IMG/VR virus record: IMGVR_UViG_3300008448_000001
Location: 124,001-188,000 of that record
Reading direction: 5' to 3' (one strand)
Length of the DNA: 64,000 bases
Notes under the pieces: model-generated
What the model saw: the letters and a program-made list of their open reading frames with translations, nothing else
Told to the model about the DNA's origin: nothing
Databases searched by the model: none
Made by a program: the position numbers and the translations under genes
Shown here: one piece after another, positions 1,564 through 46,371 of the stretch
Layout: each line of letters starts with the position of its first letter
Position numbering within the stretch: the first letter of the stretch is position 1

Positions 1564-2487
1564 ATGACGTTAAACGGCAGCACATCTCCCGGTGTCGACA
1601 ATTCCAGCGAGGTCAAGCAAAACCGCTACATTTCGTGCGAACCACGAGCGTGCCCGTCAACATGCGAAAGCGTGTTTGACATGGTGCACGTTTCTTACTT
1701 GATACGTGGTGGCACGCGTGTAATGTGGCAGCTCTTAGACAGCTTCAACGATTTGCAGCCTTGGGTTTTTCAGCTGCAAGCCGGTCAGACGGGTAACCCG
1801 GACGCCGACGATTGGACGGACATCGGTCTTGCCGTTGAGAACACGTGCTATGCGATAGACCCGCAGCAAAGATCTTTCACGCGGTCTCTGGCCACCTACT
1901 ATCGAGTAAAGGTTACGACACCGAACCAGACGTACTTTTCTAGTCCGGTCGCGCAGACCGGGATTTTGAACGTGCGGGATTGGCGAATAGCACGTGAAAT
2001 AGCGAGAAAAGAAAAGCTGCGGTTCATGTACACCGCACAGGACGGTTACCTTCTCAAACGAAGGCTTACAGGTGAAAACTGCCCTCGTTGCCTGGACCCG
2101 CAGACAATGGAGATCACCGATCCGTACTGCCCGCAGTGCTGGGGAACCGGCAAACTGTGCGGTTACTACTACCCGCTTGCCTGCGTCTGGGCCGACCTTC
2201 AACCAAGCTCAAGCAAGCTTAACATCGACGATCAATCTGTTCGTGGTACGGTGCAAGACGTTCGAATTAAGGCCCGGATGTTAATGCTTCCGATCATCGG
2301 CGAGCAAGACGTATGGGTGTCACGTAAAACCGACACGCGATATTACATCGAGGCCACACAAAACATTTTTGAAATGCGAGGGGTTCCGATAGTAGCAGAA
2401 GTCGTGCTTCGACCGGCTCCGGCTACGGACGTTGCCTATCGTATACCCATTCCACAGCAGGATGCTTGGCTCCAGGAGCGATGTTAA
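1564..2487 (+). CDS. Putative head-closure/neck protein with Zn finger
   Basis: CPRC...CPQCWGTG motif followed by a beta-rich domain; position in neck cluster. Confidence 0.5.
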   Translation: MTLNGSTSPGVDNSSEVKQNRYISCEPRACPSTCESVFDMVHVSYLIRGGTRVMWQLLDSFNDLQPWVFQLQAGQTGNPDADDWTDIGLAVENTCYAIDPQQRSFTRSLATYYRVKVTTPNQTYFSSPVAQTGILNVRDWRIAREIARKEKLRFMYTAQDGYLLKRRLTGENCPRCLDPQTMEITDPYCPQCWGTGKLCGYYYPLACVWADLQPSSSKLNIDDQSVRGTVQDVRIKARMLMLPIIGEQDVWVSRKTDTRYYIEATQNIFEMRGVPIVAEVVLRPAPATDVAYRIPIPQQDAWLQERC

Positions 2488-2699: not shown

Positions 2700-3421
2700 C
2701 AACGAACTGGTGCCCCACCCCTGACCCGCAGCCTTCAAAAGACAACTACGGAACGCAAAGCACCGTCGACATTCCTTTTTTGTGCGACAACGGTTGGCAA
2801 CCAATTCTCATAACGGGCTTTTTCCGCGACTTCCTTACGCGGCAATGGTCGGATGCGCAAAACATACTGACACCGGAGCTTCGCCAATATCTATGGAAAG
2901 AGCAAACTGATTCCGGTATATTGATCGAAACCGTTCACCGATGGCGGGGCGATATCGTTGAAAAACGCCCTGCGATCATGATAAAACGCAATTCGTACCG
3001 AAACTTGGCAATGGGTTTTTCCCACCAGATTCAAGGCGGAGGCTTGGCGGCTTATCAAACCGAAAAGGGGGCTATCAAGCGTTATGCCACACATTACGTT
3101 GGATCGCACACGCTTTTTTGCATACATCAGACAGGCGCTTCTGCGGACATGCTTGCAACTGAGGTCCAAAATCAGCTGATGGAGTTTTCGCCAATCGTGC
3201 GATCACACTTGAAGCTGAGACAATTTAGCGTGGCCGAGGTGGGAGCGATTCAAGAGCTAGAAGAGTCTACTGAAAATTACGTTGTACCCGTTACTGCCAG
3301 CTGGGCTTACGAGCACACTTGGGAGTTACGCGAAAAATCGCTACCACTGCAGGCTGTTTCACTATCCAGTTTCCTTGGCGAAAACGACATCTCGATGAGG
3401 AGCCGTTACCAAGGACCGTAA
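2696..3421 (+). CDS. Putative tail terminator/completion protein
   Basis: 241 aa gene directly before sheath; KRPAIMIKR and alpha/beta pattern typical of tail completion proteins; mainly synteny. Confidence 0.5.
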   Translation: MTTNWCPTPDPQPSKDNYGTQSTVDIPFLCDNGWQPILITGFFRDFLTRQWSDAQNILTPELRQYLWKEQTDSGILIETVHRWRGDIVEKRPAIMIKRNSYRNLAMGFSHQIQGGGLAAYQTEKGAIKRYATHYVGSHTLFCIHQTGASADMLATEVQNQLMEFSPIVRSHLKLRQFSVAEVGAIQELEESTENYVVPVTASWAYEHTWELREKSLPLQAVSLSSFLGENDISMRSRYQGP

Positions 3422-3439
3422 TTCAAAAACGAGGACACG

Positions 3440-6268
3440 ATGGCAACTTACGTTTTACCGCAAGTATTGGTTTACCAGGACTTCACTTCGCAACCTGCGG
3501 TTGCTGCTAATCCCTTGTGCGCTCACATCTCTGGTGGGCACGCACATCTCGTTCGTCAGTCGCAGAGCGACGAACGTGACGATGGTCGGTTAGGCCTTTA
3601 CGACAACGTTTCTGACAACGACTACGCTTGGCCCAACAAGCCCGCCGGAAGCCTGATCGACTCAAGCTACACCAAGCTGTACATCGAAAACGCGCTGTTG
3701 GCTTACTTCAGCGATGCGCTGAGTGCGGGTAGCGATGTGGAAGTTTTGAGCGGTTTCAAAAACCGCATCCGAGCGGCCTCCATCAATTTCGCATCCAGCG
3801 GAGCTTATGCGCGAGATCCGGATCTGTACGATCGTGATGTGAAAGTCGGCGACGTTATTCGAGTTCGCGGTGTGCCGACTGGCAGCGGAACGCTCGGGGA
3901 TCCGATCAACTTGTGGACTTACGTTCAGGCGTTGGTGGCGGATGCTTTGCCTGCGACTATCGCTCCTGCGACCATAGAGCCTTCTAACGCTGACACCCAG
4001 AGCTGCACACACTCTGTCACACAGACGGCAGGTCCGGTCAACTGCGTTTCGGCGACCGTCAACGGTTGCATTTACGACGGAACACCGGATGGTAAGATCA
4101 GCGAAACTTACACCGTCAAAGTCTTGGACAGCTCGGTTAACGGCGATCACACCACCGCTCGTTTACTTGTGCTTTCTGCCAGCGGTACCGACGATCAAGT
4201 CGACGTTGTCCCCTCGGCAAGCGGTTCGCCTACTGCAATTGGAAGTCGCGGGCTTACCTTGACTTTCTCGGATGCGGATACCGCCGCTTGTTCACTCTCG
4301 GCAGACAACTCCGGTGTCAGCTCGGATGACCTGATCGCGGGCCAAGAGTTCACCGTTGTAGTCAATCAAGCGTTTACGGCAACCACGGCTTTCTCCGACG
4401 GAACGTACAACAGTCGCGAAGACACGACCTACATCGTCACGGTGACCAAAGGCGGAAGCTTCGATACCTTGCCCGAGATCTCCGTTACGACCGTAGGTGG
4501 TACCGATCAAAGCGGGCCGCACGTGGTTACTGCGACTGGCGTAGATGTCAACATCGGTACGCGAGGGGTTATGATCGCGTTTGGCGCTTCCACCAAGTTG
4601 AACAAGGGCGATCGCTTTTACGTGCCCGTTCAAGGCATCAGCAACGGACCTGTTCGCACGATCGTACTGGGCCACAACCTCGACTCGACTTTTGCTTCCG
4701 GGGACGAGGTCGGCATCGACCTGTACATCCGAAAGCCTTTGCTCGAAGTCGAAGCCAACCGGACCGGCATGGCTCCGCTCACCAACTGGGAGCAGTCGGC
4801 TACTGAGTTCACCGTTAAGTCCGGTATCGTGGCCTATGACGCGAGCTGGACTGACAGCGGCGTTGCGCTGCCCTTGGAAGTTCGCTCGGCGGCAGAACTC
4901 GACTACGGAATCCTTTTCGTCGAGTATCGCGCTTGGTTGCCTACGCTGGCAAACCAGATCGGTGGCCTTTCGAACGTCGGCGATATCGACCAGATCAGCG
5001 GACCATTGACTCCCGACAACCCTCTGAAGTGGGGTGTTTTCCAAGGTGTGTCTAACAGCAACGGGACACCAGTCCTTTACACGGCTGTGACAGACCCGTC
5101 GAGTCTTGACGCTTGGGCGGAAGTGCTCGAGGTTGCTTTGACTCGCGATGACATCTACGGTCCCGTTCCACTCACGCGGGACGCGGCTGTTTTGAGCCTT
5201 TTCCAGGCACACGTGAACGGGGCTTCGTCGCCGACCGAGGCACAATGGCGTACGGGTTGGTTCAATCTTGCGGGAATTCCCGAGATTCCGATCGTTTCCG
5301 CTGGATCCTCGATTACCGGCTACATGACGGCCACGACAAACGACGGTCAAAACGCTTTAGCTGTGTTCGAAGATGACCCGTCTACCGGCGGCACGCAATA
5401 CACGATTTGCCGTGTACCTGCCGCCAACTCCGACTTCATTAAGAACGGGGTACGGGCAGGCGATATCGTGCGAGCCATCTACAACGGCGACGGTTTCGGT
5501 AATTTCACTTACAGCGAGTACATCGTCGAAGAAGTGCAATCTGAAAACCAGCTTCGGTTAGCAGCCGGTCCCGCAGCCCCGCAGACTGTACCTGCCAAGA
5601 TTGAAGTTTGGCGAAACTTGTCGCTGGATGAAGAGTCCACAGCCATCGCAAAGGTTGCGGGTGCTTACAACGATCGACGCATCCGAGCTGTTTGGCCGGA
5701 CAAAGTCGAGGGGGCGGGTCTGATTCAGGAAGGCTACTTCCTGAACTGTGCTCTTTCCGGGTTGGCGTCCGCAGTGTTGCCGCAGCAAGGTCTGACAAAC
5801 GTACAGATTACAGGGTTTTCTGCCGTTCCCCGTTCGACGCGGTTTAACAAACTGCAACTGGACAACATGGCAAAATCCGGAGTATGGATTGTCACGCAAA
5901 GTCGCGATGGAGAGATCTATACGCGACACGCGGTGACAACTGGCGACTACGAAGACATCAATCAACGCGAAGAGATGATCACACGCAACGTCGACAGTAT
6001 CAGTTATCGCGTCAAGGACTACTTCGCGCCTTGGATCGGTGTAACTAACGTCACACCTTCCATGCGGGATATCATCCTGGGCGGTGCCGACAAACTGTTC
6101 CGTCTGTTGAAGACCGAGCGATCCACGCCGCAGCTCGGCGGGCAGCTGATAGACGCAACAATTGACAGGTTCTTCATTTCGGAGGTCTTCAAAGATCGTT
6201 ATGTCCTGTATGCGACTTACACAGTACCGTACGCGACAAACAACATCGAAGTGCACCAGGTTGTTTAA
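3440..6268 (+). CDS. Tail sheath protein
   Basis: GAGGA RBS; N-terminal YVLPQVLV and sheath-type C-terminal domain (QLDNMAKSGVWIV...RHAVTT...EEMITRNVDSI...VPYATNNIEV). Confidence 0.85.
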   Translation: MATYVLPQVLVYQDFTSQPAVAANPLCAHISGGHAHLVRQSQSDERDDGRLGLYDNVSDNDYAWPNKPAGSLIDSSYTKLYIENALLAYFSDALSAGSDVEVLSGFKNRIRAASINFASSGAYARDPDLYDRDVKVGDVIRVRGVPTGSGTLGDPINLWTYVQALVADALPATIAPATIEPSNADTQSCTHSVTQTAGPVNCVSATVNGCIYDGTPDGKISETYTVKVLDSSVNGDHTTARLLVLSASGTDDQVDVVPSASGSPTAIGSRGLTLTFSDADTAACSLSADNSGVSSDDLIAGQEFTVVVNQAFTATTAFSDGTYNSREDTTYIVTVTKGGSFDTLPEISVTTVGGTDQSGPHVVTATGVDVNIGTRGVMIAFGASTKLNKGDRFYVPVQGISNGPVRTIVLGHNLDSTFASGDEVGIDLYIRKPLLEVEANRTGMAPLTNWEQSATEFTVKSGIVAYDASWTDSGVALPLEVRSAAELDYGILFVEYRAWLPTLANQIGGLSNVGDIDQISGPLTPDNPLKWGVFQGVSNSNGTPVLYTAVTDPSSLDAWAEVLEVALTRDDIYGPVPLTRDAAVLSLFQAHVNGASSPTEAQWRTGWFNLAGIPEIPIVSAGSSITGYMTATTNDGQNALAVFEDDPSTGGTQYTICRVPAANSDFIKNGVRAGDIVRAIYNGDGFGNFTYSEYIVEEVQSENQLRLAAGPAAPQTVPAKIEVWRNLSLDEESTAIAKVAGAYNDRRIRAVWPDKVEGAGLIQEGYFLNCALSGLASAVLPQQGLTNVQITGFSAVPRSTRFNKLQLDNMAKSGVWIVTQSRDGEIYTRHAVTTGDYEDINQREEMITRNVDSISYRVKDYFAPWIGVTNVTPSMRDIILGGADKLFRLLKTERSTPQLGGQLIDATIDRFFISEVFKDRYVLYATYTVPYATNNIEVHQVV

Positions 6269-6354: not shown

Positions 6355-6906
6355 ATGGCTGACGTATACGCAAGGCAGAGAACAGGGTTCGGAGGCTCTT
6401 TTGCTTCCGACTTGGCAGCGATGACAATCGCAGGAAGCACGACTCCGTTAGGTATCGTGCAGAACGTGCAGATTAACTTTTCGCAGCAAGTGGCACGCAT
6501 TTATGATGTTTCCAACGGCGGATCGGCCAACGCAGGCACGGGAGGTTTTGTGCCCGTGTTCTACGTTGGAGGCCGAACGCAAGGCAACGCCAGCATTGCT
6601 CGAGTGTTGGGCCCGCAGTCCGGCGCTTTGTGCGCTTTCTATGCTGAGATCGGAAACGTCTGCTCGCCGCAGGATCTGACGTTCACGTTTGCCGGGGGTT
6701 GCGGTCCTTCCGGGCAGGGTTCAAGTCCTACCCAGCCGATCGCTTTTAACACAGCAGTCGGTAACGCGGAGGCGAATTCCGTCAAGTACACGATTCAGGC
6801 CGCGACCATGGTTAACGTAACGGTCGGTGTCGCGGCGCAAGACATGATCGTGAATGAAAACATCGCGCTGATGTTTGCCAACTTGAGCTGCGACGAAATC
6901 GTGTAA
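6355..6906 (+). CDS. Tail tube protein
   Basis: 183 aa beta-rich gene immediately after sheath, GAGGT RBS, followed by a terminator. Confidence 0.7.
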   Translation: MADVYARQRTGFGGSFASDLAAMTIAGSTTPLGIVQNVQINFSQQVARIYDVSNGGSANAGTGGFVPVFYVGGRTQGNASIARVLGPQSGALCAFYAEIGNVCSPQDLTFTFAGGCGPSGQGSSPTQPIAFNTAVGNAEANSVKYTIQAATMVNVTVGVAAQDMIVNENIALMFANLSCDEIV

Positions 6907-7053: not shown

Positions 7054-9861
7054 ATGTCACTACCTTGGAACTCCGCGCAGAACGTTAACAGCCAACCCGC
7101 CGTATTGAATGCCAAGCAGACAGGGGCGGCTCCCAGCGATTACGCCTTTCTTTACAGCCTCTTCTCTCGAGTTCAAGAGGCTACTTCTGTCGTACAGCAG
7201 TCGATCACAGGTACGGTAGCGGAAGACCCAAAAAAGCTTGCGGTGGTGCAGAACCATACGTTCCAGCAAGACACTCCGCTTCGAATGGGTAAAGTTCTTT
7301 TCGCCATACCTTACTTGCATTGTTATGTTGTGCAGTTGGCGGGTAGGCAAGGCAAATGCATGGCCGTAGCCAGTGGGCACAATGCCATGACGCCCTTAGG
7401 TGTTCGAAGCGGAGAAGTCATTCCGCCGAATTCAAACGTCATTCTGTGGAAACCGAAGAGCTCATTCCTGGCTTATATTATGGGTACAGTGCCCTCGCCG
7501 CTGTGGTCTGACTTTTACAGCCCGGCTGAGATCCTGCAGCAAGGCGGCAACACGGGTATCAAGCAGATTCCGGCTTACGTTAATCTGATCAATTCGTCGA
7601 CGGACGGTTTGGGTGTCAGGGCCCACACAGCCGGAAGGCCTCTAGACGGAACCGTTGGCGAATACGTTCGAATGTCGGAGACAGGTATTGGCTTGCTAAT
7701 TGACTCGTTCCAGGCTTACTTGCGAGTGAACGAAGCGACCGGGCTTTTCCTCAACTATTTCGACGACTACGCCAAGCTTTCCGGCGTTTCGCTCGATGTT
7801 CAATCTTATGCAACGCACGTTTCTCAGCGACTAGACGAGGGTGAAATTTACTCTCGCATCGGGCACGCCATCTACCCTTGGGAAGCTACCGGCATGTACG
7901 GGCCGGATGCCAACTTCACAAGTAGTAATGACCCGGCTAAAGTTCAGCTCGACCGTGATTTTCCGCTCGCCGAGATAGACGTGAACAATCCAGGTCAAAC
8001 CCCGATTCATCGTTTGACCGAGTACGGCGGATACCTGGGACAAGGCTATCAGCGGATGTTGATGCGTCCGTCAAAGACCAGCGGCATTCGAGTTGCGACC
8101 GATGCAGCGTCGAATGTGGATACGGGTCTTTTCCACGAGATGTTGAGCTTGGACGGAAGTTACGGCGTCCGCACTGCTAAGAGTTACTCAATCGTCAAGT
8201 ATCCTGCAATTCCTGTCCCGCAGGAGCTTCGAAAGCCGGAGGACGCGAAAGGCGACGACCTTGCCGAGAATAACAACTACCGTTTCAGTGGAGTATACGG
8301 TAGCGGCGACGAGCACAAGGTTCGAGACTGGGACGATTCGTCTGTAACCGACGTGCCGTCAATTCTCAGGGCTGCGGGCGTGATGGACATGCTATCGCAC
8401 CAGTTCAACTGGAAAGGTACGCATGCCTTTGCTTACCATGCGAAAGATTACCATTACCCGCAGGAAAAGAACGGGGGTAGTGTTCTGGCCGCGGGTGTCG
8501 AGTTTTATCGCGGCAGCATGTCTCAAGCGTACGTGCAGGTAGAACCGAAAAAGCTGGAGATCGACAAGCGATACGGCGACTCAAACTACTACAACACCAT
8601 GTCTTTTTTCCGGCTCGAAGAAGACGGAAGCGTGATCATCGCAGACGGTTTTGGTTCGCAGCTAACCATGACCGGCGGGCAGATCCGGCTGGAGGCAGGT
8701 GGCGACGTAATGATACTGTCCGGGTCCCGTGCAATCACCATGGCCGATGATGTGATTTTGCGTGCCCGATCTAACGTAGACGTGTCCGCAAGTGACAAAG
8801 ACGTCCGCATCAAGGCGGAAAACAACATACAGGTACTGGCCGGGAATGGCGGTTATGGTGGTATCTTGCTAGAAACGAAGGGGCAGGGAACGTCTCAGAA
8901 TTACCAACAAAAGATTGGCGAAGAGGTGCAATCCGCAGGCATCACGTTGTTAGCCAAAGGCTCTGCGGTTAACGCTATTTCGCAAGACAATTACATCCGC
9001 ACCGGTGTCACGAAAGAGGTCGCCGAAGGCTACGGTACGTTTATTGTGGACTGCGGCAGTGGTCGCGGCGATTGTATCAACTACGCCAGACAGCACGTTT
9101 TTGTGAACAGCATAGGACTGGGTATCTACCATAGCGCACCGGGCCAAGGCGAAGCGACCATCAACAAGTCGCACTTCTTCGGCCCGTCTTTTTCAAAGAT
9201 AAACGGCCCAACGGTATTTACTAAGAACGTTGTCATCACCGAGAACGGCGCACTTGGCGTCGAGGGGAGCGTTTACTCGAAGGGCCAGATCTTCGCTCTG
9301 CGAGCCATGGCCTGTTACAAAGGGCGAGTTGGCGACAGCTCGCAGGGAGAGACTCCGACAGCAATTCGGGACTTTATCGACGCGTACGAAGAAGCAGTTC
9401 CTAAATTCAATACCGCCGGACAGACGGCAATACAGTATCTGCAAGAAAGAGTGTGGGCCGAGAACCGTGTAGGTAATAACACGTTCCTGTTGGACGAGGT
9501 CGGATTTTCGTACCGTGACAACAGTCAAAGCGGAAACGCTTACGGGTACGCAGAAGGCAAGTTTTTCTTGCTGGAAACGCGTTGGCAGCAGCTTGATCGG
9601 ATGGGGCTGACGCAGGTCTCGTCTTCGACTTGGCAAGAGAACCCCGTGTTCTACCAAGGAAATAGCCTGTATCCTTGGCCCGGAAAGAAAAACTGGGCTG
9701 GTGACGAGACGTTTTTAGCTTACAGTAACACCGACGATTTTGTGGTTTTTGACAAGGGTGCGAAAGCCGCTAAGGACCGTGACGCGAGTCAAACGGATTA
9801 CGAGTCGCCTGTGTTTAAACCTTGGAAGCAACGTGTCTGCGATGGCAATTACAAACTATAG
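7054..9861 (+). CDS. Baseplate spike / gp5-VgrG-like protein
   Basis: OB-like N-terminal region; beta-helix-like stretch (RLEEDGSVII...IRLEAGGDVMILSG...VRIKAENNIQV). Confidence 0.55.
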   Translation: MSLPWNSAQNVNSQPAVLNAKQTGAAPSDYAFLYSLFSRVQEATSVVQQSITGTVAEDPKKLAVVQNHTFQQDTPLRMGKVLFAIPYLHCYVVQLAGRQGKCMAVASGHNAMTPLGVRSGEVIPPNSNVILWKPKSSFLAYIMGTVPSPLWSDFYSPAEILQQGGNTGIKQIPAYVNLINSSTDGLGVRAHTAGRPLDGTVGEYVRMSETGIGLLIDSFQAYLRVNEATGLFLNYFDDYAKLSGVSLDVQSYATHVSQRLDEGEIYSRIGHAIYPWEATGMYGPDANFTSSNDPAKVQLDRDFPLAEIDVNNPGQTPIHRLTEYGGYLGQGYQRMLMRPSKTSGIRVATDAASNVDTGLFHEMLSLDGSYGVRTAKSYSIVKYPAIPVPQELRKPEDAKGDDLAENNNYRFSGVYGSGDEHKVRDWDDSSVTDVPSILRAAGVMDMLSHQFNWKGTHAFAYHAKDYHYPQEKNGGSVLAAGVEFYRGSMSQAYVQVEPKKLEIDKRYGDSNYYNTMSFFRLEEDGSVIIADGFGSQLTMTGGQIRLEAGGDVMILSGSRAITMADDVILRARSNVDVSASDKDVRIKAENNIQVLAGNGGYGGILLETKGQGTSQNYQQKIGEEVQSAGITLLAKGSAVNAISQDNYIRTGVTKEVAEGYGTFIVDCGSGRGDCINYARQHVFVNSIGLGIYHSAPGQGEATINKSHFFGPSFSKINGPTVFTKNVVITENGALGVEGSVYSKGQIFALRAMACYKGRVGDSSQGETPTAIRDFIDAYEEAVPKFNTAGQTAIQYLQERVWAENRVGNNTFLLDEVGFSYRDNSQSGNAYGYAEGKFFLLETRWQQLDRMGLTQVSSSTWQENPVFYQGNSLYPWPGKKNWAGDETFLAYSNTDDFVVFDKGAKAAKDRDASQTDYESPVFKPWKQRVCDGNYKL

Positions 9862-18990: not shown

Positions 18991-19478
18991 TGTATTTTTC
19001 TGGAAGTGTTCAGCAATACAAAGGGAAAACAGTCGATTTTCTCATGTACGATGGGGCGAAACCCTCCGGTGACACGCAAGTCTTGCCTGCACTCGTACAG
19101 GAAGGTCAAAGCGGAGCGTTGATAACTGGCCCGGCTAAGCTGGCTCAACGATTTTTGCTCGAGCTGCTTACCGATAAGGGTTCGCTGCAGTACGACATTA
19201 ATCGCGGCACTTTTTTCATGACGCAGATCCGGAGCGGGTTAGCCCGGACGTCCGCCGACCTGTTTCAAATTTTCGCAGCTAGCGAACTGGACTTGCGAAA
19301 CAATTTACGCTTAGAAGATGACACCTCTTTTCCAGACGACGAGCGGTATGCTTCTTCGGAGCTTTTGGATGCCTCTTTCATAGGGGATGCGATTTACCTT
19401 AGAATACAGCTCAACAGCGTGGCTGGTGAGTCGCGAGAAGTTCTGTTTCCACTACGAATCCCGGCGGTTCAGCTATGA
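18990..19478 (+). CDS. gp25-like baseplate wedge / sheath initiator
   Basis: ITGPAKLAQRFLLELLTDKGS...RGT motif; precedes baseplate J. Confidence 0.7.
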   Translation: MYFSGSVQQYKGKTVDFLMYDGAKPSGDTQVLPALVQEGQSGALITGPAKLAQRFLLELLTDKGSLQYDINRGTFFMTQIRSGLARTSADLFQIFAASELDLRNNLRLEDDTSFPDDERYASSELLDASFIGDAIYLRIQLNSVAGESREVLFPLRIPAVQL

Positions 19479-21142
19479 CTCTAACCTATTCCGACTTTGA
19501 AATCTCCGATCTTTCGCAATTGGATGCAGCCGATGTGCAACAGACGCTGCTGCGGACTATTGCGCAGCTGCAAGCGTTGAATCCGACGTTGGATTTACGC
19601 CGAGGAGCTTTCCGCGACACCATTGCTTACTTGCAGTCAGTTTTGGGTACTGCCGCTCGCGTAAACTTGGAGCGGTACCAGTCTGCAAGAAGTCTACAAC
19701 GCATTCAAGAGGATCCGACGCTCGCTGACGAAACTGTGGTCAGCGAAGTGCTTTCCAACTGGGGTATTGTGCGAAAGACCGGCACCAAGGCAAGCGGGCC
19801 GGTCACGATCGAACTTTCAGCACTTCGACCGTTAACGATACCGCAAAACAGCGTGTTTGAAGCTAACGGCTTCCAATACTTGGCCACGGCGACTTTTATC
19901 GGAAGAATATCGGCTGCCCAAATACTGGGGAGCAACGACCGGCTGCTGGTTCCACTTAGCAACGGCAACTACGCTTTCACGATCGAGGTAGAAGCCGTGG
20001 ATATCGGTGCCGACAGGAAGCTGAATGCAGGCGACCTAATAGTCCCCAACCGCGCGGTCGTTAACTACGTCACAAGCTATGCCACGTCTTCTTTCGAGGA
20101 CGGAACCAACACCGAGACAAACGAAGAGCTTATTAACGAGTTGCAGCTGGGTGTCGCGGCAAAAACGCTCTCGAACCGCACGAACATGCGCGCCTACTTG
20201 CGAAGTCTGCCGCAGTTCGAGTCGGTCACAAATCAATCCATCGTCGGTTGTGGCGATCCCGAAATGCTGCGGGACAAACACACCATCTTCCCGACGCTTA
20301 CCGGCGGTAGGGTAGACTGGTACATACGCGGGCAATCTGCGTTGCAACGAAAAACGGTTGCAGTCGTGGCCACCTGCATGTCGGTATCAACGCTTACAGG
20401 AACAAGTGAGTGGCAGTTTGCTGTTCCGGCGACAACTCTTCCCGGGTTTTACGAGGTGGACAAGATACGCAAGGCAACCGACTCTGCTGTCGTGTCAGGC
20501 TTCGGTATCGTATCGGACACGCGTTACACCGCGTTACCTGCAAGCGGTTTCTCCCCGGACATTGCAACAGCAGAGGAGAGCGCATATTCCGCTTTCCAGT
20601 CCGCAATTATCCTTTTCACAGATACGGTCACATCGGTTGCAGATTTAGCCGTCGGTCAGACCGCAGAGTATGTTTACGAGATAACGGGCACGCCACATGT
20701 CCGTGAACTGCAGGATCTTGTTTCCAGCCGAGATATCCGGCACTACGGCGCCGATGCCTTGATCAAAGCCCCTGTCCCGTGCTTTGTCAGCGTGACTCTT
20801 ACGATAAACAAGGCTGCTGACGATGTTTCTCCGTCGCTAGAGCCTATTCGGTCCGCCATTGTGACGGCGATTAACTCCGTCGACTTCCAAGGCGTGTTAC
20901 CTGGTTCTTTGATCGTGGATACCGTGCACAACTACCTGCAAGGTCGATTGAACGTCACGGAACTGGATCTTTTGGGTCGGATTCGCATGCCGGACGGCAC
21001 CATCAAGTATTTACGCAGCGATGACGCCTTGATAATACCAGAACTTCCTGGAAAAATGGTAACCTCCAAGACAGTTCAGTTTTTTGCCGAAGCGATAGAC
21101 GTAAACTTGAACGTAATCTCCTCAATACCGGTTGCAACCTAA
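19475..21142 (+). CDS. Baseplate J-like protein
   Basis: WGIVRKTGTKASGPVTI, IEVEAVDIG, GTNTETNEEL motifs. Confidence 0.85.
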   Translation: MTLTYSDFEISDLSQLDAADVQQTLLRTIAQLQALNPTLDLRRGAFRDTIAYLQSVLGTAARVNLERYQSARSLQRIQEDPTLADETVVSEVLSNWGIVRKTGTKASGPVTIELSALRPLTIPQNSVFEANGFQYLATATFIGRISAAQILGSNDRLLVPLSNGNYAFTIEVEAVDIGADRKLNAGDLIVPNRAVVNYVTSYATSSFEDGTNTETNEELINELQLGVAAKTLSNRTNMRAYLRSLPQFESVTNQSIVGCGDPEMLRDKHTIFPTLTGGRVDWYIRGQSALQRKTVAVVATCMSVSTLTGTSEWQFAVPATTLPGFYEVDKIRKATDSAVVSGFGIVSDTRYTALPASGFSPDIATAEESAYSAFQSAIILFTDTVTSVADLAVGQTAEYVYEITGTPHVRELQDLVSSRDIRHYGADALIKAPVPCFVSVTLTINKAADDVSPSLEPIRSAIVTAINSVDFQGVLPGSLIVDTVHNYLQGRLNVTELDLLGRIRMPDGTIKYLRSDDALIIPELPGKMVTSKTVQFFAEAIDVNLNVISSIPVAT

Positions 21143-35104: not shown

Positions 35105-37882
35105 ATGGCGCCTACGACGCAGTGCCCACAGGGACCGCAGTCACCCGTGTTTGACATCGTCAAATGCGACGTGCCTTGCATTTTCCCTATTCCAGGTGGA
35201 AACTGGCTGATAAACCCACAGGTTCCGCAAGCCCCAGCGGATATCTTTGATTGTCCGTCGCTGCCTGTTCCGTTGCTCGACCCGGATCCAATTTGCCCAA
35301 TTCTTTCCGCCCAAGACGACATCACCACCAACGTGGTACCGATCGGAAGCGAAAGAGTTATTTTTACAGTGACAAAGGGTCAATGCTGCGATTACGTGTT
35401 GAACTTGCAGGTAGACTTTCCCTGTCCGGAAATAACGGGAGAGGCGAACGTCACTACCGTAGGACCTGGCGGAGCACCCTTTGCCAATTTAAACGTCAAC
35501 AAGTCTGGCGATTGCTCCTTTGACATTCAGCTGAACATCGGCTTGCCCAGCCCGCAGCTTGGACCGCAAGGACCGCAAGGACCGCAAGGCCCACAGGGTG
35601 CAGAAGGCCCACAAGGTGCAGAAGGGCCGCAGGGTGCAGAAGGCCCACAAGGACCGCAGGGGCCGGCTGGCCCACAGGGCCCACAAGGCCCGCAAGGTTT
35701 AATCGGACCACAAGGTTTAATCGGACCACAAGGTTTAATCGGACCGCAAGGAGCGGAGGGACCTCAAGGTACGGCAGGCCCGCAAGGTACACCCGGCCCT
35801 CAAGGCCCAATAGGCCCTGACGGTAATCCCGGGCCCGACGGCAATCCTGGGCCTGACGGTAACCCTGGACCGGACGGCAACCCCGGTCCTGACGGCAATC
35901 CCGGAGACCAAGGACCCCAAGGCGACCGCGGACCCCAAGGTCACCGTGGCCCGCAAGGTTACCCTGGCTACACGGGGGCCACCGGCTATCGTGGACCACA
36001 AGGGTATCGAGGTCCGCAAGGTTATCGCGGCCCTCAAGGATATCGCGGAGCGCAAGGCTACAGAGGTCCGCAAGGCTACAGAGGTCCGCAAGGTTACGAG
36101 GGTCCGCAAGGGCCACAGGGTCCCCAAGGAAAACGCGGCCCACAAGGCTATCGCGGACCACAGGGCCACCGTGGGCCACAGGGTTACCGTGGTGCGGAAG
36201 GCCCGCAAGGCCCTTGTTGCGAGGGATCGACAGGTACCACTGGGCCAACTGGTCCAACCGGTCCTACAGGTCCAACCGGGCCTACGGGTCCAACCGGGCC
36301 GACCACGCCTACTTACGAGTTACTCATCAGTTGGGAATTCAACGATCAACTGACGCCCGAGGTTGACCCGCCAGCCCCGTTAAAGTACGCCGGAGACAGC
36401 GAACTTTTCTACGCGGACCCCGACGCGGAATCGGCAAGGCAACAAGCTTTCTCGTTGCACGGTCAGATTTACTTCAACAACGCTTCGCTGGCTGCGGTCA
36501 CGCACATCTATGTCGAGAAATCAAACTACAACAGCGTAGACATATCCGCGTTGCTCGCCACAGCTAAACCCACCGACACGTTAAAAACTCGCGTGATGTC
36601 CGACGTCAACAAGTTCGGCATTTATCGAGTCTTGGCCGTCACGGAAGAAACAACGCTTTTCGACTACACAGTTGAAGCGATAACAACTAACGGCGCTTAC
36701 ACGTTGCTGGATCAGGTCGTTCTCGAAATTCAACCCACAGGTGCCCAGGGTGCAACGGGTGCGACCGGCCCAACGGGTAGCGGTGTGCCGGCGGGCGGAT
36801 TGACCGGGCAGGTGCTGGCGAAAAACACTGACACAAATTACGACACGGTTTGGATAGACAACTACGCCAAGGAACTACGCGTCACCGTCAAGAACATGTC
36901 CGGCGGTGTCATCAACAAAGGCCAAGCCGTTATGGCCACCGGGGCGACAGGGGATACGATCGAAGTTACTCTGGCAAACGCGGACGGTACTGTTCTTCCA
37001 CGTTACATGCTCGGCATAGCATCTGAAAACATAGCCAGTGAAGCCTCGGGTTACGTTACCCTGATTGGCGACATGCAACACCTGAATACCCTCAGCTACA
37101 CTGTGGGTACGGTGCTGTGGTTGAATCCGAGCACGCCTGGCGGGTTAACGGCGACAGAACCGGCGGCGAGCACTATACGCATGCCGGTGGCCATCGTTAC
37201 GCGGCAGCATGTCGAGAGTGGTCGAATTTATGTCCGCATGTATTTGCAGCAGACGGCTTTGCATGAGCTTTTTGACGTTAAGTTCAGCAGCCTGCAAAAC
37301 GGTAATTACCTTCGCTACGATAGCACGCTTTCGGCTTGGAAGAACGATGCAACCAGTCCCACGGGGGCAACCGGAACACAGGGCGCTACAGGGGCCACGG
37401 GCCCAGGCACAACAGTAAATGCGACTGCGACAAACACCGACGCCACGTTCTATCCCGTGTTCGTCGCAGCCGCTGGGAGTAACCAGACACCGAGTGTCGA
37501 CACAACGGCACCGTCGCTGAGCTACAACCCGAGCACCGATTTGCTCAACGTTGGCGGTTTGACCGCGAACAAGTACGCAACAGGTACCGGCATAGTTTCG
37601 GTGGTAACGGGTACAACTCGATCGCTGAGCAGTGCGGACAACGGTATTGTCTTAGAGTGCAGCAGCAGTTCGGCAGTGACAGTCACGGTTCCCACCGGGC
37701 TTCCAGTGGGTTTCACACTTACAATAATTCAAACTGGAACAGGTCAAATATCGTTTAGCGCGTCTGGGACCACGATAAACAACCGTCAAAGCCACACCAA
37801 GACCGCCGGGCGATGGGCCGTGGTATCGCTGATTCAACGTAGTACTAACAACTTCATTTTGGCTGGGGACACTGCCGCATAA
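35105..37882 (+). CDS. Collagen-like tail/capsid fibre protein
   Basis: Long Gly-X-Y tract flanked by Cys-rich N-terminus and several fibre-type domains. Confidence 0.85.
35561..36303 (+). repeat. Collagen Gly-X-Y coding repeats in blocks ([30 protein letters not shown])
   Basis: 9 and 18 bp periodic repeats with synonymous variation. Confidence 0.95.
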
Positions 37883-38362: not shown

Positions 38363-38701
38363 ATGCTAGATCTAGTGTTAGAAGTGGATCTTCGCGATCC
38401 AACAGAAGTTGATACCGTTAAAGCGTATTGCGTGCTTACGGAAATCAGCCTTAAACTGGATACGAAAGACGTTTGTTGCGTCTTCACCTGCTGGAAAAGC
38501 CTGGAAGCGAGAACGCACGGCTGTAAACCTTTTGCGGTTTTACCTGTTGTAGTCGAGCAAGATGCGGTTCTCCGCGCAGTATTCGACCGCCACTTTGAAG
38601 GCCTAACCGCGATGTGCGATGAACTGGTGCAGTCCTTAAGACAACCGGAAAAGAAAGCAAGGATAGAACAGAATGCCAGAAAAAATACCGTTGGTGCTTA
38701 A
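38363..38701 (+). CDS. Hypothetical protein
   Basis: GGGAG RBS; 112 aa. Confidence 0.6.
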   Translation: MLDLVLEVDLRDPTEVDTVKAYCVLTEISLKLDTKDVCCVFTCWKSLEARTHGCKPFAVLPVVVEQDAVLRAVFDRHFEGLTAMCDELVQSLRQPEKKARIEQNARKNTVGA

Positions 38702-40655
38702 ACACGGTCACCCGCACGCCATGGGTGATACGATTCTTTTTACTTCCATTGTGCGGGATCTGCACGCGGCCTACCCTGGAAAATACGAGACCGAGGTTGT
38801 TACAAATTTTACGAACGTGTGGTGGAACAATCCGCACGTTGTGAAGCTTTCCGCCTCGCAACGATCCTTAGCACGAATTGTCACGATGGACTGGGGAAAA
38901 GCAATCAAGCAGCACGCGATCGACGAAAAGGGAAACAAGCGGCACATACTCTCCTGGTACCACCATAACTTCGAAGAGAAGACCGGAATAAGGGTTCCCG
39001 TCACGAAGCCTAAAGCAGACTTGTATCTGTCGGACGACGAAAAGACACGTCGTTTGGCCGGAAGGTACTGGGTGGTCGTATCGGGCGGTAAACTCGACGC
39101 CACAGTAAAACACTGGCACGCTCACCGCATGCAAGAAGTCATCGACAAACTTAAAGCTGAAGGAATAAGCTGTGTGCAAGTGGGTGCAACACAAACCAAT
39201 CACGTTCACCCGCCACTGGAGCGAACGCTCAACCTCATCGGGCAGACGGATAATGTCCGGGACTTGTGGAACATCATATTGCATGCGGACGGCGTGATAT
39301 GCGGCATCACGGGTGCAATGCACATAGCCGCCGCGTTCGACAAGCCTTGCGTGGTGTACGCGGGAGGGAGGGAGGACCCTTGGTTCGAAGCCTACACGAA
39401 TGAGTACAAAGCCTTCGGGCCGGAAGCTTCGGCAGTCAATGTGCCGCATCGTTACCTGCACACCGTGGGCAAGCTACCGTGCTGCGAAACGTACGGGTGC
39501 TGGAGAAACAGGGTAGTTCCACTGGATCCTTCCGACAGGAACCGGAAGGTACATTTGCTTTGTCAAAATCCCGTGAAACCGGTTGAAACCCATCCCGTGG
39601 CCGGCTGCCAGGACTTGATACTACCCGCTGACGTGGTTTCGGCTGTGATGTCTTACTATTCCGATGGCACGATTCCGGCGGTCGATAAGTCTTCCGTTGT
39701 AAGCCAGAGTCTTCAAGTACCGGTTGTTGAGCTGGTGGAGTACAAGGAATCCCCTGTGCAGCTTATACGTGAACCGTCACGGCCCGAGGTACCGCAGAAG
39801 CAGCACCAGATGTCGCACCCCTTGGAGCTCAAGGCGAATCATACGGGACGAATCGCAAAGACAATTCAAGGCATAGATGATCCGGCAATTGGCGGAAAGG
39901 TCACGATCTTCGTTCTGTGCTACGGTCCGTACACGTCTCTTGCGACGCGTTGCATCGACGGCATACTTCGAACGGTGCCTGCCGACAAGCTGGACCTTCG
40001 CGTTGCGACTAATCAAGTGCCCAAGTCCACCTTGAATTACTTGAAAACAACACCTGCTACGAAAATCTACGAGCACAGTGCTAACGACTTCAAGTACCCG
40101 GTAATGCGGCAAATGTTTTACGACGAAGAGCACCCGATTAAGACCGAGTACATGGTCTGGTTCGATGACGACACGTGGATTTCTAACCCTGCTTGGCTCA
40201 GCGACCTGTGCACGACCATTGCTGCAAATCATAAAAACGGCTTTAGACTTTACGGCAACATGATGTTCCACGATCTCGGCATTTACGCGAACGCCGGCTA
40301 CCGTCCAGACAGCTGGTTCAAAGGAGCGACCTGGCATAAAGGCAAACCACTTAGATCGAAAACTGGCGGCGAGGATGTTTCGAACGGATCCGTAATTGAT
40401 TTCGCGGTCGGATGGTGTTGGGCGCTGCACACGCAGACGATGCGACAGGCGGACATTCCCGACTGCCGGCTGCTTCACAACGGCGGCGACATTACAATCG
40501 GCGAGCAGTTGCACCAGACCGGCTACGGTATAAAGCAATGGAACAAAAACAAAAGTCTTGTTGCCTGTCCGTCTCGCGAGCAAGGCGGAAGACGAGGGGC
40601 AAGTCAGCGTTTTCCGTGGGACCCTAAATTCGAGATGTCACAAATTAGGCGATAA
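38673..40655 (+). CDS. Bifunctional glycosyltransferase (GT9-like GT-B domain fused to GT2-like GT-A domain)
   Basis: AMGDTIL...LIGQTD...ITGAMHIAAAFDKP (GT9 signature); VTIFVLCY...VWFDDDTW (GT-A DxD). Confidence 0.85.
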   Translation: MPEKIPLVLKHGHPHAMGDTILFTSIVRDLHAAYPGKYETEVVTNFTNVWWNNPHVVKLSASQRSLARIVTMDWGKAIKQHAIDEKGNKRHILSWYHHNFEEKTGIRVPVTKPKADLYLSDDEKTRRLAGRYWVVVSGGKLDATVKHWHAHRMQEVIDKLKAEGISCVQVGATQTNHVHPPLERTLNLIGQTDNVRDLWNIILHADGVICGITGAMHIAAAFDKPCVVYAGGREDPWFEAYTNEYKAFGPEASAVNVPHRYLHTVGKLPCCETYGCWRNRVVPLDPSDRNRKVHLLCQNPVKPVETHPVAGCQDLILPADVVSAVMSYYSDGTIPAVDKSSVVSQSLQVPVVELVEYKESPVQLIREPSRPEVPQKQHQMSHPLELKANHTGRIAKTIQGIDDPAIGGKVTIFVLCYGPYTSLATRCIDGILRTVPADKLDLRVATNQVPKSTLNYLKTTPATKIYEHSANDFKYPVMRQMFYDEEHPIKTEYMVWFDDDTWISNPAWLSDLCTTIAANHKNGFRLYGNMMFHDLGIYANAGYRPDSWFKGATWHKGKPLRSKTGGEDVSNGSVIDFAVGWCWALHTQTMRQADIPDCRLLHNGGDITIGEQLHQTGYGIKQWNKNKSLVACPSREQGGRRGASQRFPWDPKFEMSQIRR

Positions 40656-41726: not shown

Positions 41727-42023
41727 ATGGCAACACACAAACTGCTGGTACTCGAGGACACAGTTCTCCTTACACTTGCGACAAACCCGAATTTTGTACG
41801 GGAATTTCCGTTCCTTGCGAGCGGTGCCGTGCCCACAGCAAAGAAAAGCTGCAAGCCCTGCAATCGGGCGGCGTCCAAACGCGTGCAGGCGATGCAAACC
41901 ATAAAGCAGTCTATTGTCAACATGGGTGTTGAGAAGAAGAAACGGCTGAAAGAGATGCTTAGCGCGGAGAAGCTTCGCCTTCGTGTTGCTCAAAACGGTA
42001 AGGTCGTAGAGTACACTTTTTAG
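41727..42023 (+). CDS. Small basic protein with CxxC
   Basis: ATG 1 nt after previous stop; KSCKPCNR. Confidence 0.6.
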   Translation: MATHKLLVLEDTVLLTLATNPNFVREFPFLASGAVPTAKKSCKPCNRAASKRVQAMQTIKQSIVNMGVEKKKRLKEMLSAEKLRLRVAQNGKVVEYTF

Positions 42024-42058
42024 ACCTTAATTTAGGGTAAAAACGTGTCAGAATAATA

Positions 42059-42911
42059 TGCAGACGACTTATCGTTTGCAGGTCGGTCGAAGTACAAAGG
42101 CAAACGTACTTTCACTGGCTGAAGTCGAGTATCGCAAAGACCGCACTCACTTGATGTAAAAATCAAGCCGAGGGTAACAGCGTCTTTTGTCTTTGCGATA
42201 TTTGCGGGCGGCTAGCACTTGTGTCGTCCTCACCGAGATCTTCTCTATATGGGTCTTGTGAAGCATTACTGTGTGGCGTGTAAAAGTACACGTGGCACGG
42301 TTTCGGGGTTGAACTAAAAGTCTGAAAAGACATCCCCCAGTTAGTGAAAAACTGTTCTGATGAAAAGTCCTAAATTTCTGTGGGCTTCTTCGTTGGCGTC
42401 TTGTTGTATCTTTTTACGCAAGGCGAAGCCAAAAAGCAGTGAACGTTCCGAGAACATACCTTCTCGTTAAAACATAGGTAACGTGGTTACTAGCTCCACT
42501 AAAAAAAGGCTAGCAGATGTTTTGATCAAAAACGATTAAAGCACCCAGTGCGAGTCTGGCGTTTTGTCCAACGTAAAACGATACGCAAAGCTACCGCGAA
42601 GGAGCCATTAATAATCCGGGGAAGTTCTGGATCGCTTAGCAAGCGGCAACAGCTCGTACCCTTAGGCTAACAACCTAAGCTAGCCTGGGCATACAGGTAA
42701 AAATGCAGAGCTCACTCTTTTAGGGGTCCTAGTTACAGGATTCGATTACCGCAAGCATAAAGACTGGTGAGAGTCTTTACTGAGTAAGCGGTATACGGCA
42801 CCATGAATCAGCCTCTACGTGGCGGTGCTAGATAACCAACCGATGATTCATTCCGCGTGTTTTACCACGCAAGCTCTACCGCATTCAGTGGATGCGGCGG
42901 TGGGGCTTTTT
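42059..42911 (+). ncRNA. Candidate large structured ncRNA
   Basis: ~900 bp without a credible ORF in a gene-dense genome; near-continuous hairpins with G-U pairs on + strand; ends in terminator. Confidence 0.6.
42871..42911 (+). terminator. Rho-independent terminator
   Basis: AGCTCTACCGC...GCGGTGGGGCT stem followed by T run. Confidence 0.7.
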
Positions 42912-42937
42912 ACTTTTGCATTCACAAGGATAAAATT

Positions 42938-43414
42938 ATGTTTTCTTTTTTGTTCAAAAAGCAAACCCCGGCAGCGACTCCCGTCAAGCGGAAAACCAAG
43001 TTTGAGCAAGCTGTGGCGTTTGCAAGATCCGCATGGCCGTTGCCGTCCGACTACTCCGATTGGTTTGCTCATAACCATTTCGACGTGCTAGTAATGCGCG
43101 GTTTGGATGAGCCAAGGGACTCGCAATCTCCGTTACATCGTGTAATGGAGGCATGGCACGCTAGCGTGCCAAAGGAGCTGCGTGACGAGCTGCTCGCTTC
43201 GGAAGAGTACCGCCAAGCGGTACTGCATGTGTTCTCGAGGCAGACGGAAGAAAGCCTTTCCAAGTTGCTTTCAAAAATGGGCGATCACGGCTACTGGGCG
43301 CCGATGGCGGCTTGTGTCCGGGATGTCCTGGCTCGCAAATGGTACGGGGCGATGCGAATTGTCCGTCTCAACGATGACGGGAAAATTCATTACAACTACA
43401 CCGTACGCGACTAG
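42938..43414 (+). CDS. Hypothetical protein
   Basis: AAGGA RBS before ATG 42938. Confidence 0.65.
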   Translation: MFSFLFKKQTPAATPVKRKTKFEQAVAFARSAWPLPSDYSDWFAHNHFDVLVMRGLDEPRDSQSPLHRVMEAWHASVPKELRDELLASEEYRQAVLHVFSRQTEESLSKLLSKMGDHGYWAPMAACVRDVLARKWYGAMRIVRLNDDGKIHYNYTVRD

Positions 43415-44012: not shown

Positions 44013-44857
44013 ACACATGAAACCTGAAGAACTAGCAACGATTTTAACTGAGCACGCGAAGTGGTTAAAGGATGAAGGTGGCAAAAGGGCCAACCTGCAC
44101 AGGGCCGAACTTCGCGGGGCCAACCTTGGTGGGGCCGAACTTGCCATGGTCAAACTTGCCGGGGCCGACCTTCGCGATGCCAACCTTCGCGGGGCCAACC
44201 TTGGTGGGGCCGAACTTGCCATGGTCAAACTTGCCGGGGCCGACCTTCGCGATGCCAACCTTGCCGGGGCCAACCTTCGCGGGGCCAACCTTCGCAGGGC
44301 CTTCCTTTTAGGAGCCAGCCTTATCGGGGCCGACCTGGAAGGGGCCAACCTTTACAAGGCCAACCTTATCGGAGCCAACCTTGCCGGGGCCAACCTTCGC
44401 GGGGCCAACCTTTACAAGGCCAACCTTATCGGAGCCAACCTTGACGGGGCCGACCTTCGCGGGGTCAACCTTCGCGGGGCCAACCTTCGCCGGGCCAATC
44501 TTGAAGGGGCCGACCTTCGCGGGGCCAACCTTAACGGCGCTGACCTTGACGATGCTAATCTTACTGGGGCAAGAATCGACACCCTGGTTTGTCGCATGGA
44601 TATCGATCGTTGGTCGATCTGCGTTTACGCGGACCGAACATCCATCGGTTGCAAAACACAACCTAATGAAAACTGGTTGGCTTGGACATCGGAAAGCGAA
44701 GAGATCAAGAAGATGCACTCCGATGCGGCTTCTTGGTGGGCAACGCACGGCGAGTTTATCAAAGCAGCAATCCGCCACGTGATAAAAAATTCGAAAGGCA
44801 ATAACACATGAAACCTGAAGAACTAGCAACGATTTTAACTGAGCACGCGAAGTGGTT
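44013..44857 (+). repeat. 54 bp exact direct repeat at 44013-44066 and 44804-44857
   Basis: ACACATGAAACCTGAAGAACTAGCAACGATTTTAACTGAGCACGCGAAGTGGTT twice. Confidence 0.92.
44017..44811 (+). CDS. Pentapeptide repeat protein
   Basis: Long A(N/D)LxG repeat tract plus C-terminal domain (SIGCK...WL...WW). Confidence 0.92.
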   Translation: MKPEELATILTEHAKWLKDEGGKRANLHRAELRGANLGGAELAMVKLAGADLRDANLRGANLGGAELAMVKLAGADLRDANLAGANLRGANLRRAFLLGASLIGADLEGANLYKANLIGANLAGANLRGANLYKANLIGANLDGADLRGVNLRGANLRRANLEGADLRGANLNGADLDDANLTGARIDTLVCRMDIDRWSICVYADRTSIGCKTQPNENWLAWTSESEEIKKMHSDAASWWATHGEFIKAAIRHVIKNSKGNNT

Positions 44858-45467
44858 GCGTGGCGAGGGCGGAAAGAAAGCCAACTTTTACAGTGCCAAC
44901 CTGGTTAGTGCCAACCTTTGCGGTGTTTATATGCGACATTGCGACTTTCGCCTGGCTGAGCTTGTACGGGCCAACCTGGTCTATGCCAACCTTGGCGAGG
45001 CCAACCTGCGAGGTGCCAACCTGTTAGACGCTAAACTGTTCGAGGCTAACCTGGAAGGTGCCGACTTGCGGCATGCCAACCTAAGCGAGGCCAACCTTCG
45101 AGGTGCCGACCTGCGGCATGCCAACCTGGAAGGCGCCAATCTGTACCGTGCAAACCTGGAAGGCGCCAATCTGTACCGTGCAAACCTGAAAGGTGCAAAC
45201 CTGAGCCGCACCGTCGTGATCGGCGCTTGCATCAACGCCGCAATTTGTAGGATGGATTTTGGAGGTTGGTCGGTCTGCGTTTACGCGGACCGAACAGCTA
45301 TCGGCTGCCAGCAGCGCATTAACGAGGACTGGTTAGCGTGGACGCCTGAAAGCGAAGAGATCAAGCAGATGCACGAAGATGCGTCTGCTTGGTGGAAGTC
45401 GCACGGCGAAATGATTAAAGGCGTGATACGGGGTGTGATGGCAAAAGCGAAAGGCGGTGACACGTGA
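44808..45467 (+). CDS. Pentapeptide repeat protein (tandem paralog)
   Basis: Same architecture; identical first 16 codons. Confidence 0.92.
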   Translation: MKPEELATILTEHAKWLRGEGGKKANFYSANLVSANLCGVYMRHCDFRLAELVRANLVYANLGEANLRGANLLDAKLFEANLEGADLRHANLSEANLRGADLRHANLEGANLYRANLEGANLYRANLKGANLSRTVVIGACINAAICRMDFGGWSVCVYADRTAIGCQQRINEDWLAWTPESEEIKQMHEDASAWWKSHGEMIKGVIRGVMAKAKGGDT

Positions 45468-46234: not shown

Positions 46235-46308
46235 GTGACCGTAGCTCAATAGGTTAGAGCAGGAGACTCATAATCTCTCGGTTCCCGGTTCAAGTCCGGG
46301 CGGTCACA
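46235..46308 (+). tRNA. tRNA with CAT anticodon, probably tRNA-Ile2 (otherwise elongator Met)
   Basis: Acceptor GTGACCG/CGGTCAC, D arm GCTC/GAGC, anticodon loop CTCATAA, T arm CCCGG-TTCAAGT-CCGGG, discriminator A, CCA not encoded. Confidence 0.92.
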
Positions 46309-46371
46309 CTGCTGACAACTGCTACGTAGCAGCTGTTACCTTGTTTGTTAGACCCTTTCACAGGAGTTGAT

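Follow-up and report, generated by a model that had tools for sequence, protein, structure and literature searches.

We analysed a 64,000-nt window, positions 124,001 to 188,000 of the 204.8-kb IMG/VR contig IMGVR_UViG_3300008448_000001, in which nearly all long ORFs lie on the + strand. The recognizable genes are phage structural genes: a baseplate-J protein (19475-21142), a collagen-repeat tail fibre (35105-37882), a family-9 glycosyltransferase (38673-40655) and two pentapeptide-repeat proteins (44017-45467). BLAST searches against isolated phages with the DNA of the region described below, with 10 kb around it and with the baseplate protein gave nothing, so this is an uncultivated jumbo-size phage of unknown host. 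Between a 98-aa gene (41727-42023) and a 158-aa gene (42938-43414) lie 914 bases (42024-42937) that contain, in order on the + strand, a promoter-like element (42026-42058), a structured RNA body (about 42060 to 42796), a 55-nt minimal HDV-like (theta-type) ribozyme by architecture (42797-42851), a small hairpin seen in the MFE and centroid folds (42855-42870) and an intrinsic terminator (42873-42917).

To test if this region is coding, we examined its reading frames and those of its relatives. On the + strand the longest listed ORFs are 33-40 aa and the longest stop-free stretch is 55 aa, while on the - strand the longest ORF is 56 aa. No stop-free frame is shared between lineages, and translated similarity appears in all six frames alike. 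As RNA, the + strand folds to an MFE of -311.2 kcal/mol, against -259.8 +/- 8.8 for dinucleotide shuffles (z -5.87), whereas the - strand reaches only -259.0 (z -2.09). An earlier note had described 42059-42911 as an almost continuously base-paired, roughly 850-nt non-coding region ending in a terminator, and had proposed a new large ornate phage RNA in which neither GOLLD nor ROOL was recognized. The observation is confirmed and the interpretation is supported, with the changes described below.

Relatives were found by way of the upstream 146-aa and 98-aa proteins, which led to related contigs (numbered here with the prefix L). Two exact 20-24-mers searched in IMG/VR found only the four contigs already known, a three-part pattern searched in a metagenome collection gave one true new locus (L041) and four chance hits in coding DNA, and a gapped pattern searched in IMG/VR added L202. 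In every contig whose 98-aa protein is at least about 78% identical, a homologous gene-free stretch of 850-1100 nt follows that gene directly. The lineages are L005 (95% identical to the window), clade B comprising L006, L015-L019 and L041 (about 79%), L024 (77%), L202 (71%), L026, which is identical to L027 (about 50%), and L022 (about 53%). The genes downstream of the stretch differ between lineages.

The helices are kept by compensatory changes across six to eight phage lineages. RNAalifold on six close sequences predicts 214 pairs, 36 of them with compensatory double changes, and with L026 and L022 added 56 of 139 pairs are compensatory. On six lineages the consensus energy is -206.7 on the + strand and -150.0 on the - strand, whereas forty column shuffles that keep gap pattern and conservation give -101.6 +/- 5.5 (z about -19), and 49 of 196 pairs carry compensatory changes, against 12.2 (maximum 21) in the shuffles. 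For the 5' domain (42081-42229) we built a covariance model, R1, and used it to align all lineages. On that alignment 93.2% of cells pair, against 80.4% in shuffles, and 22 of 39 pairs changed on both sides, against 8.7 in shuffles (0 of 500 reached the observed value), while sliding the partners by 1-3 columns gives 4-10. Seven of those pairs are predominantly G-U on the + strand, which fits an RNA read from that strand.

The body begins with a 5' terminal hairpin at 42059-42080 (UGCAGACGA / UCGUUUGCA), in which 4 of 9 pairs have compensatory changes and which is replaced by hairpins of different sequence in L202, L026 and L022. The 5' domain that follows has two long helices around the invariant GGCUNAAGUCGAGU strand, plus the hairpin GGGCGGC/GUCGUCC, and model R1 finds it in every lineage with more than about 75% upstream-protein identity (57-135 bits). 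The middle region (42234-42470) contains hairpins at 42234-42258, 42268-42301 and 42305-42338, a multi-helix element at 42351-42440 and a hairpin at 42449-42466; the GAAA tetraloop hairpin at 42318-42329, inside 42305-42338, is clade-specific, being absent from L024, L202, L026 and L022. The central domain at 42580-42665 (GCAAAGCUACCG...GGRGCC...UAAUA, then hairpin 42614-42632 and hairpin 42633-42645) is the most widely conserved part of the family, and a second covariance model, R2, scores 87-100 bits in all eight lineages, including the ~50%-identical L026 and L022. The 3' terminal hairpin (42748-42792), with 5 of 16 pairs compensatory, is followed by the 4-nt tail AUAC (42793-42796).

Nearly all of the stems listed in the earlier note are in the consensus structure of six lineages and carry compensatory changes: 42059-42067/42072-42080, 42081-42095/42106-42120 (which contains AAGTAC/GTACTT), 42124-42141/42189-42205, 42268-42282/42287-42301, 42490-42495/42508-42513 (CTAGC/GCTAG), 42614-42620/42626-42632, and 42748-42754/42785-42792 enclosing 42757-42765/42772-42780. 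Three are not general, in that CTTGAT/ATCAAG is a clade-specific insert absent from L024 and L202, CTTAGG/CCTAAG has no counterpart in clade B, L202 or L024 in sequence alignments, and AAAACAT/ATGTTTT is in the single-sequence MFE fold but not in the consensus. TGAATCA/TGATTCA, which the note read as a junction, is real, but it is helix P2 of a ribozyme pseudoknot.

The body matches no Rfam 15 family. At gathering thresholds Rfam gives only the tRNA-Met at 46235-46308, and it gives nothing for 41900-43050 at E<=10, nothing for the whole window at E<=0.01 and nothing for the bodies of L022, L024, L026 and L006 at E<=1. GOLLD, ROOL, OLE, HEARO, raiA, RNase P, tmRNA and the intron families are all in that library, and neither ARAGORN nor Rfam supports an RNase P, tmRNA or group I or II intron. 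A literature search found no description of such an RNA.

The relatives gave the clue to the 3' end. In clade B the Rfam type-P1 twister model (RF03160) matches L006 7469-7528 over its full length at 55.8 bits (E 4e-10 to 3e-12), and L202 has the same at 5423-5482 (58.4 bits), both lying between the last hairpin of the body and the terminator. Every core nucleotide of the model is present, but these matches, at 55.8-62.3 bits among the relatives (E 1e-11 to 4e-10), are below the gathering score of 67.2, which leaves the assignment to this family tentative. In the window, L005, L024, L026 and L022 that slot holds a different ~55-nt block, which is almost invariant even between sequences that are otherwise 50% identical.

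This block has the nested double pseudoknot topology of an HDV-like ribozyme. P1 is GGCACC (42797-42802) with GGUGCU (42824-42829), closed by a G-U pair between G42797 and U42829; P2 is AUGAAUCA (42803-42810) with UGAUUCAU (42844-42851); P3 is GCC/GGC (42811-42813/42821-42823) around L3 UCUACGU (42814-42820); P1.1 pairs C42815-U42816 with A42830-G42831; an 8-nt linker (42832-42839) stands in place of P4; and J4/2 is CCGA (42840-42843), beginning with the candidate catalytic C42840. A descriptor written for this layout hits the window once, hits the homologues and hits five further sites in other phage contigs, against one hit in 0.91 Mb (both strands) of unrelated bacterial DNA. Over ten instances, including that of the window, P1 takes five sequences and P2 seven, always complementary, P1.1 switches from CU/AG to CC/GG, and the first base of J4/2 is always C (CCGA, CCAA, CTAA, CGAA, CAAA). 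Rfam gives no hit to the window element even at E<=10 on 42740-42940; its covariance models cannot score pseudoknotted pairs and probably expect a P4. The element is thus a member of the minimal HDV-like group by architecture, with cleavage predicted rather than demonstrated.

HDV-like ribozymes cleave at the 5' edge of P1, so the predicted cut is between C42796 and G42797, leaving the terminal hairpin plus AUAC. Twisters are expected to cut inside their 5' strand, at the U-A step before the conserved AA, which in L006 and L202 would leave the homologous hairpin plus GUGU. Two unrelated ribozymes are therefore predicted to produce the same kind of end, 4 nt past the same hairpin. The same hairpin plus a 4-6-nt tail precedes the cleavage site in the HDV-like lineages of clades A and C and in the twister-bearing lineages (the tail is 5-6 nt in L024), while L026 and L022 end in a different hairpin with a 3-nt tail. 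Because the outlying lineages L026, L022 and the more distant L038 all have the HDV-like type, twister probably replaced it, an inference that rests on the identity matrix and not on a rooted tree.

The promoter-like element (CTTAATTT-N13-GTGTCAGAAT AATA) lies within the first 35 bases after the stop codon of the 98-aa gene, which are conserved in all lineages. The motif CTAAATAAT-N10-CGTGTCATTATTATAT occurs only once in the 64-kb window but recurs two or three times per locus in more distant relatives, in front of a MYG1-family exonuclease gene in L030-L035, a twister-P5 in L009 (38.1 bits, above the gathering score of 37.6) and other short units. It therefore behaves like a phage promoter. 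With CAGAAT (42049-42054) as the inferred -10 element, transcription is inferred to start at about 42060-42062, where the first helix begins. At the other end, the terminator has a G+C-rich stem (about 42873-42906) followed by UUUUUACUUUU; a simple terminator scan missed it because its loop exceeds 8 nt. It is conserved with changed stem sequence in clade B and replaced by a different hairpin plus U-run in L202, and L005 has a second copy after a ~650-nt insertion.

A distant, shorter relative, L038, whose 98-aa protein is 53% identical, has in order two promoter copies, a gene-free stretch that folds well (z -5.3), a match to R2 (30 bits, E about 7e-6, rough calibration) and an HDV-like ribozyme that does have a P4 hairpin (4364-4437). 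R1 does not find L038 or the MYG1-gene clade. The central domain plus a 3' ribozyme is thus the most widely kept part of the family.

Taken together, we consider it more likely than not (probability about 0.6) that the region is an independent transcription unit for a large, highly structured noncoding RNA of a family not yet described. In this reading a phage-type promoter starts transcription at about 42060, the transcript folds into a multi-domain body, and the ribozyme directly 3' of the body cuts at its own 5' edge, releasing the body with a 2',3'-cyclic phosphate four nucleotides after its terminal hairpin and leaving the ribozyme and terminator fragment (42797 to about 42917) as a by-product. 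The mature RNA is then probably about 737 nt, not the roughly 850 nt of the earlier note, with its 3' end made by self-cleavage rather than by the terminator. Promoter use and cleavage are inferred, in the absence of expression data or a cleavage assay, and a terminator 20 nt downstream of the ribozyme already ends the transcript, which leaves the need for trimming unexplained. That sister phages appear to reach the same end with a twister suggests that selection acts on a precise, terminator-free 3' end and not on a particular ribozyme; such an end may protect from 3' exonucleases and tailing, or provide a free 3' tail for tertiary or intermolecular contacts. The function of the body is the weakest step. 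No partner gene travels with it, no partner protein, target or ligand was found, and antisense matches within the window are 11-13-mers at chance level. By analogy with GOLLD and ROOL we rate a trans-acting structural or assembling RNA as the most likely role, with low confidence. The family is also narrow, about seven lineages of one group of uncultivated phages.

The most serious alternative, although we consider it unlikely, is that the ribozyme is operon punctuation, giving the downstream message a 5'-OH, ribozyme-capped end or simply separating transcripts, with the structured region a long untranslated spacer or the 3' UTR of the 98-aa gene. Three further twister-P1 copies do lie between protein genes in L202, and HDV-like ribozymes flank small ORFs in contig L051, so these ribozyme types may be general transcript punctuation rather than dedicated to this RNA. 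This explains the ribozyme but not the structure upstream of it, as a spacer would not keep about 200 base pairs by compensatory change over lineages down to ~50% identity. In addition, the promoter motif lies between the upstream gene and the RNA, a terminator separates the ribozyme from the next gene, and the next gene differs between lineages while the RNA stays.

A cis-acting leader, riboswitch or thermosensor for the 158-aa gene is suggested by its position directly upstream on the same strand, but is very unlikely, because a terminator and a separate promoter-like site (42909-42936) intervene, the downstream gene is replaced in L005, L006, L202, L022 and L026 while the RNA is kept, the size is far beyond known leaders, and self-cleavage would detach the region from the gene. 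A DNA-level element, such as a replication origin, packaging site or recombination hot spot, is similarly improbable. Although there are many inverted repeats and the G+C (0.455) is lower than in the neighbouring sequence, both the single-sequence and the consensus folding energies are strand-asymmetric, several conserved pairs are G-U, which would be A-C on the other strand, no iterons or tandem repeats are seen in the alignments and there is no GC-skew switch, and ribozyme, promoter and terminator all point the same way. A decayed or recoded protein gene, despite a 117-126-aa stop-free stretch in clade B and a 219-aa gene placed inside the region by a gene caller in L017, is excluded by the absence of any frame open in more than one clade and the equal translated similarity in all six frames, with neighbouring genes all read in the standard code and substitutions compensatory in helices.

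A more far-reaching reading, which is possible but tentative, is that this is the founding member of a class of large ornate phage RNAs with a modular build, comprising its own promoter, a ~740-nt multi-domain body and an exchangeable 3' self-cleaving cassette, HDV-like in some lineages and twister in others. The cyclic-phosphate, terminator-free end would then be needed for what the RNA does, for example self-assembly into a higher-order particle as in GOLLD or ROOL, end-joining or docking to a host machine, and ribozyme-made ends would be a general maturation route for phage stable RNAs (tRNA, tmRNA and large ornate RNAs). Very few large, intricately folded bacterial or phage RNAs are known, and a further, unrelated class would widen that small set. 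The apparent occupation of one slot by two unrelated ribozyme classes is an evolutionary argument that the exact 3' end matters, and would give small phage ribozymes, whose roles are mostly unknown, a concrete job beyond tRNA trimming. The ribozymes themselves are of known kinds; the body and the architecture as a whole were not found in Rfam 15 or in the literature searched.

The window element has the same element order and sizes as published theta ribozyme entries (Kienbeck et al. 2024, PMC10879173): P1 of 6 bp, J1/2 of 0-2 nt, P2 of 6-8 bp, P3 GCC/GGC, L3 U-CY-NCGU, P1.1 of 2 bp, a short unpaired linker in place of P4 (5-7 nt in the published tables) and J4/2 starting with C (published examples include CTAA, CCGA and CGAAT), followed by P2'. 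Like those ribozymes it is in a phage, and it lies directly 3' of a predicted stable RNA whose end it would trim. It is not a theta ribozyme in the strict sense, as no tRNA adjoins it: ARAGORN and Rfam find a single tRNA, at 46235-46309, 3.4 kb away. It corresponds to the 'isolated ribozyme' class of that paper, and its exact sequence is not in the supplementary tables. The type-P1 twister is matched in the very slot in relatives (the L006 clade and L202) but is not present in the window itself. In an unrelated phage contig, L073, the same ribozyme type starts one base after the CCA end of a tmRNA, which shows this ribozyme type placed to trim another large stable RNA, although the upstream RNA there is a recognizable tmRNA and the window RNA has no tRNA-like domain detectable by ARAGORN or Rfam. 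GOLLD and ROOL (PMC12286853), which recent cryo-EM work showed forming RNA-only cages, are likewise phage-encoded RNAs of 600-800+ nt with many helices supported by covariation, no protein-coding capacity and unknown function, and the window RNA lies in the wider neighbourhood of a tRNA-Met gene, as GOLLD env-38 lies downstream of a Met-tRNA. There is no sequence or structure match to either Rfam model, the window RNA has its own promoter motif and a predicted ribozyme-defined 3' end, of which we found no mention for GOLLD or ROOL, and the host group and phage type (an uncultivated ~200-kb myovirus-like phage) differ.

A conserved promoter-like motif, CTAAATAAT-N10-CGTGTCATTATTATAT, is repeated in this phage group. 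Copies are found at 6766, 7846 and 8478 of L009, a contig of a distant clade, and there are two copies each in the related contigs L007, L008, L030, L038 and L202, while the motif occurs only once in the 64-kb window, at 42026-42058. The motif does not look like a sigma-70 consensus, so it may be read by a phage-specified factor. In L009 a type-P5 twister at 7880-7944 (38.1 bits, above the gathering score of 37.6) lies directly after a promoter copy, that is, at the 5’ end of a transcription unit. In the more distant clade that includes L030-L035 the same inferred promoter position drives a MYG1-family (PF03690) exonuclease gene, at about 4626-5741, instead of the large RNA, and some members (L035, L036) also carry an inserted Endonuclease VII gene on the opposite strand.

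In L025, a short contig of a further lineage (450-912), about 285 nt lie between the promoter with first hairpin (436-501) and the 5’ domain (786-891), so the RNA body tolerates a large insertion there. In L005, the lineage closest to the window, a ~650-nt insertion with small ORFs (7654-8360) follows the RNA unit and ends in a second copy of the terminator region, as the last ~75 nt of the query match twice. The only tRNA in the window is a tRNA-Met (CAU) at 46235-46309, 3.4 kb downstream of the RNA; L022, one of the more divergent lineages, also has a tRNA downstream, at 7702-7774. Two adjacent pentapeptide-repeat proteins of 264 and 219 aa are encoded at 44017-45467 of the window, which is unusual cargo for a phage.

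Ribozymes of these types also occur between protein genes. In L202, a lineage whose large RNA is followed by a twister, three further type-P1 twister ribozymes (57.7-62.3 bits) at 1880-1938, 2505-2563 and 3108-3172 (- strand) sit in short gaps between small protein genes downstream of the large RNA, making four twisters within 3.6 kb of one phage contig. In another phage contig, L051, two HDV-like ribozymes at 3171-3233 and 2164-2216 (- strand; same in L062) lie about 950 nt apart and flank small ORFs, with a third, unresolved ribozyme-like stretch between them. The RNA between the two HDV-like ribozymes would carry a 5’-OH end and a 2’,3’-cyclic phosphate end, which are the ends an RtcB-type ligase could join.

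We also observed an HDV-like ribozyme next to a recognizable stable RNA in L073 (IMGVR_UViG_3300001480_000369), an unrelated phage contig, at 3227-3722. A literature search returned no paper that, by its title or abstract, concerns an HDV-like ribozyme placed in this way beside a phage tmRNA. The locus also holds 10 tRNA genes. ARAGORN calls a phage tmRNA at 3227-3665 that ends in CCA, and the HDV-like ribozyme (P1 AGTCACC) starts at 3666, so it would cut exactly at the mature tmRNA 3’ end.
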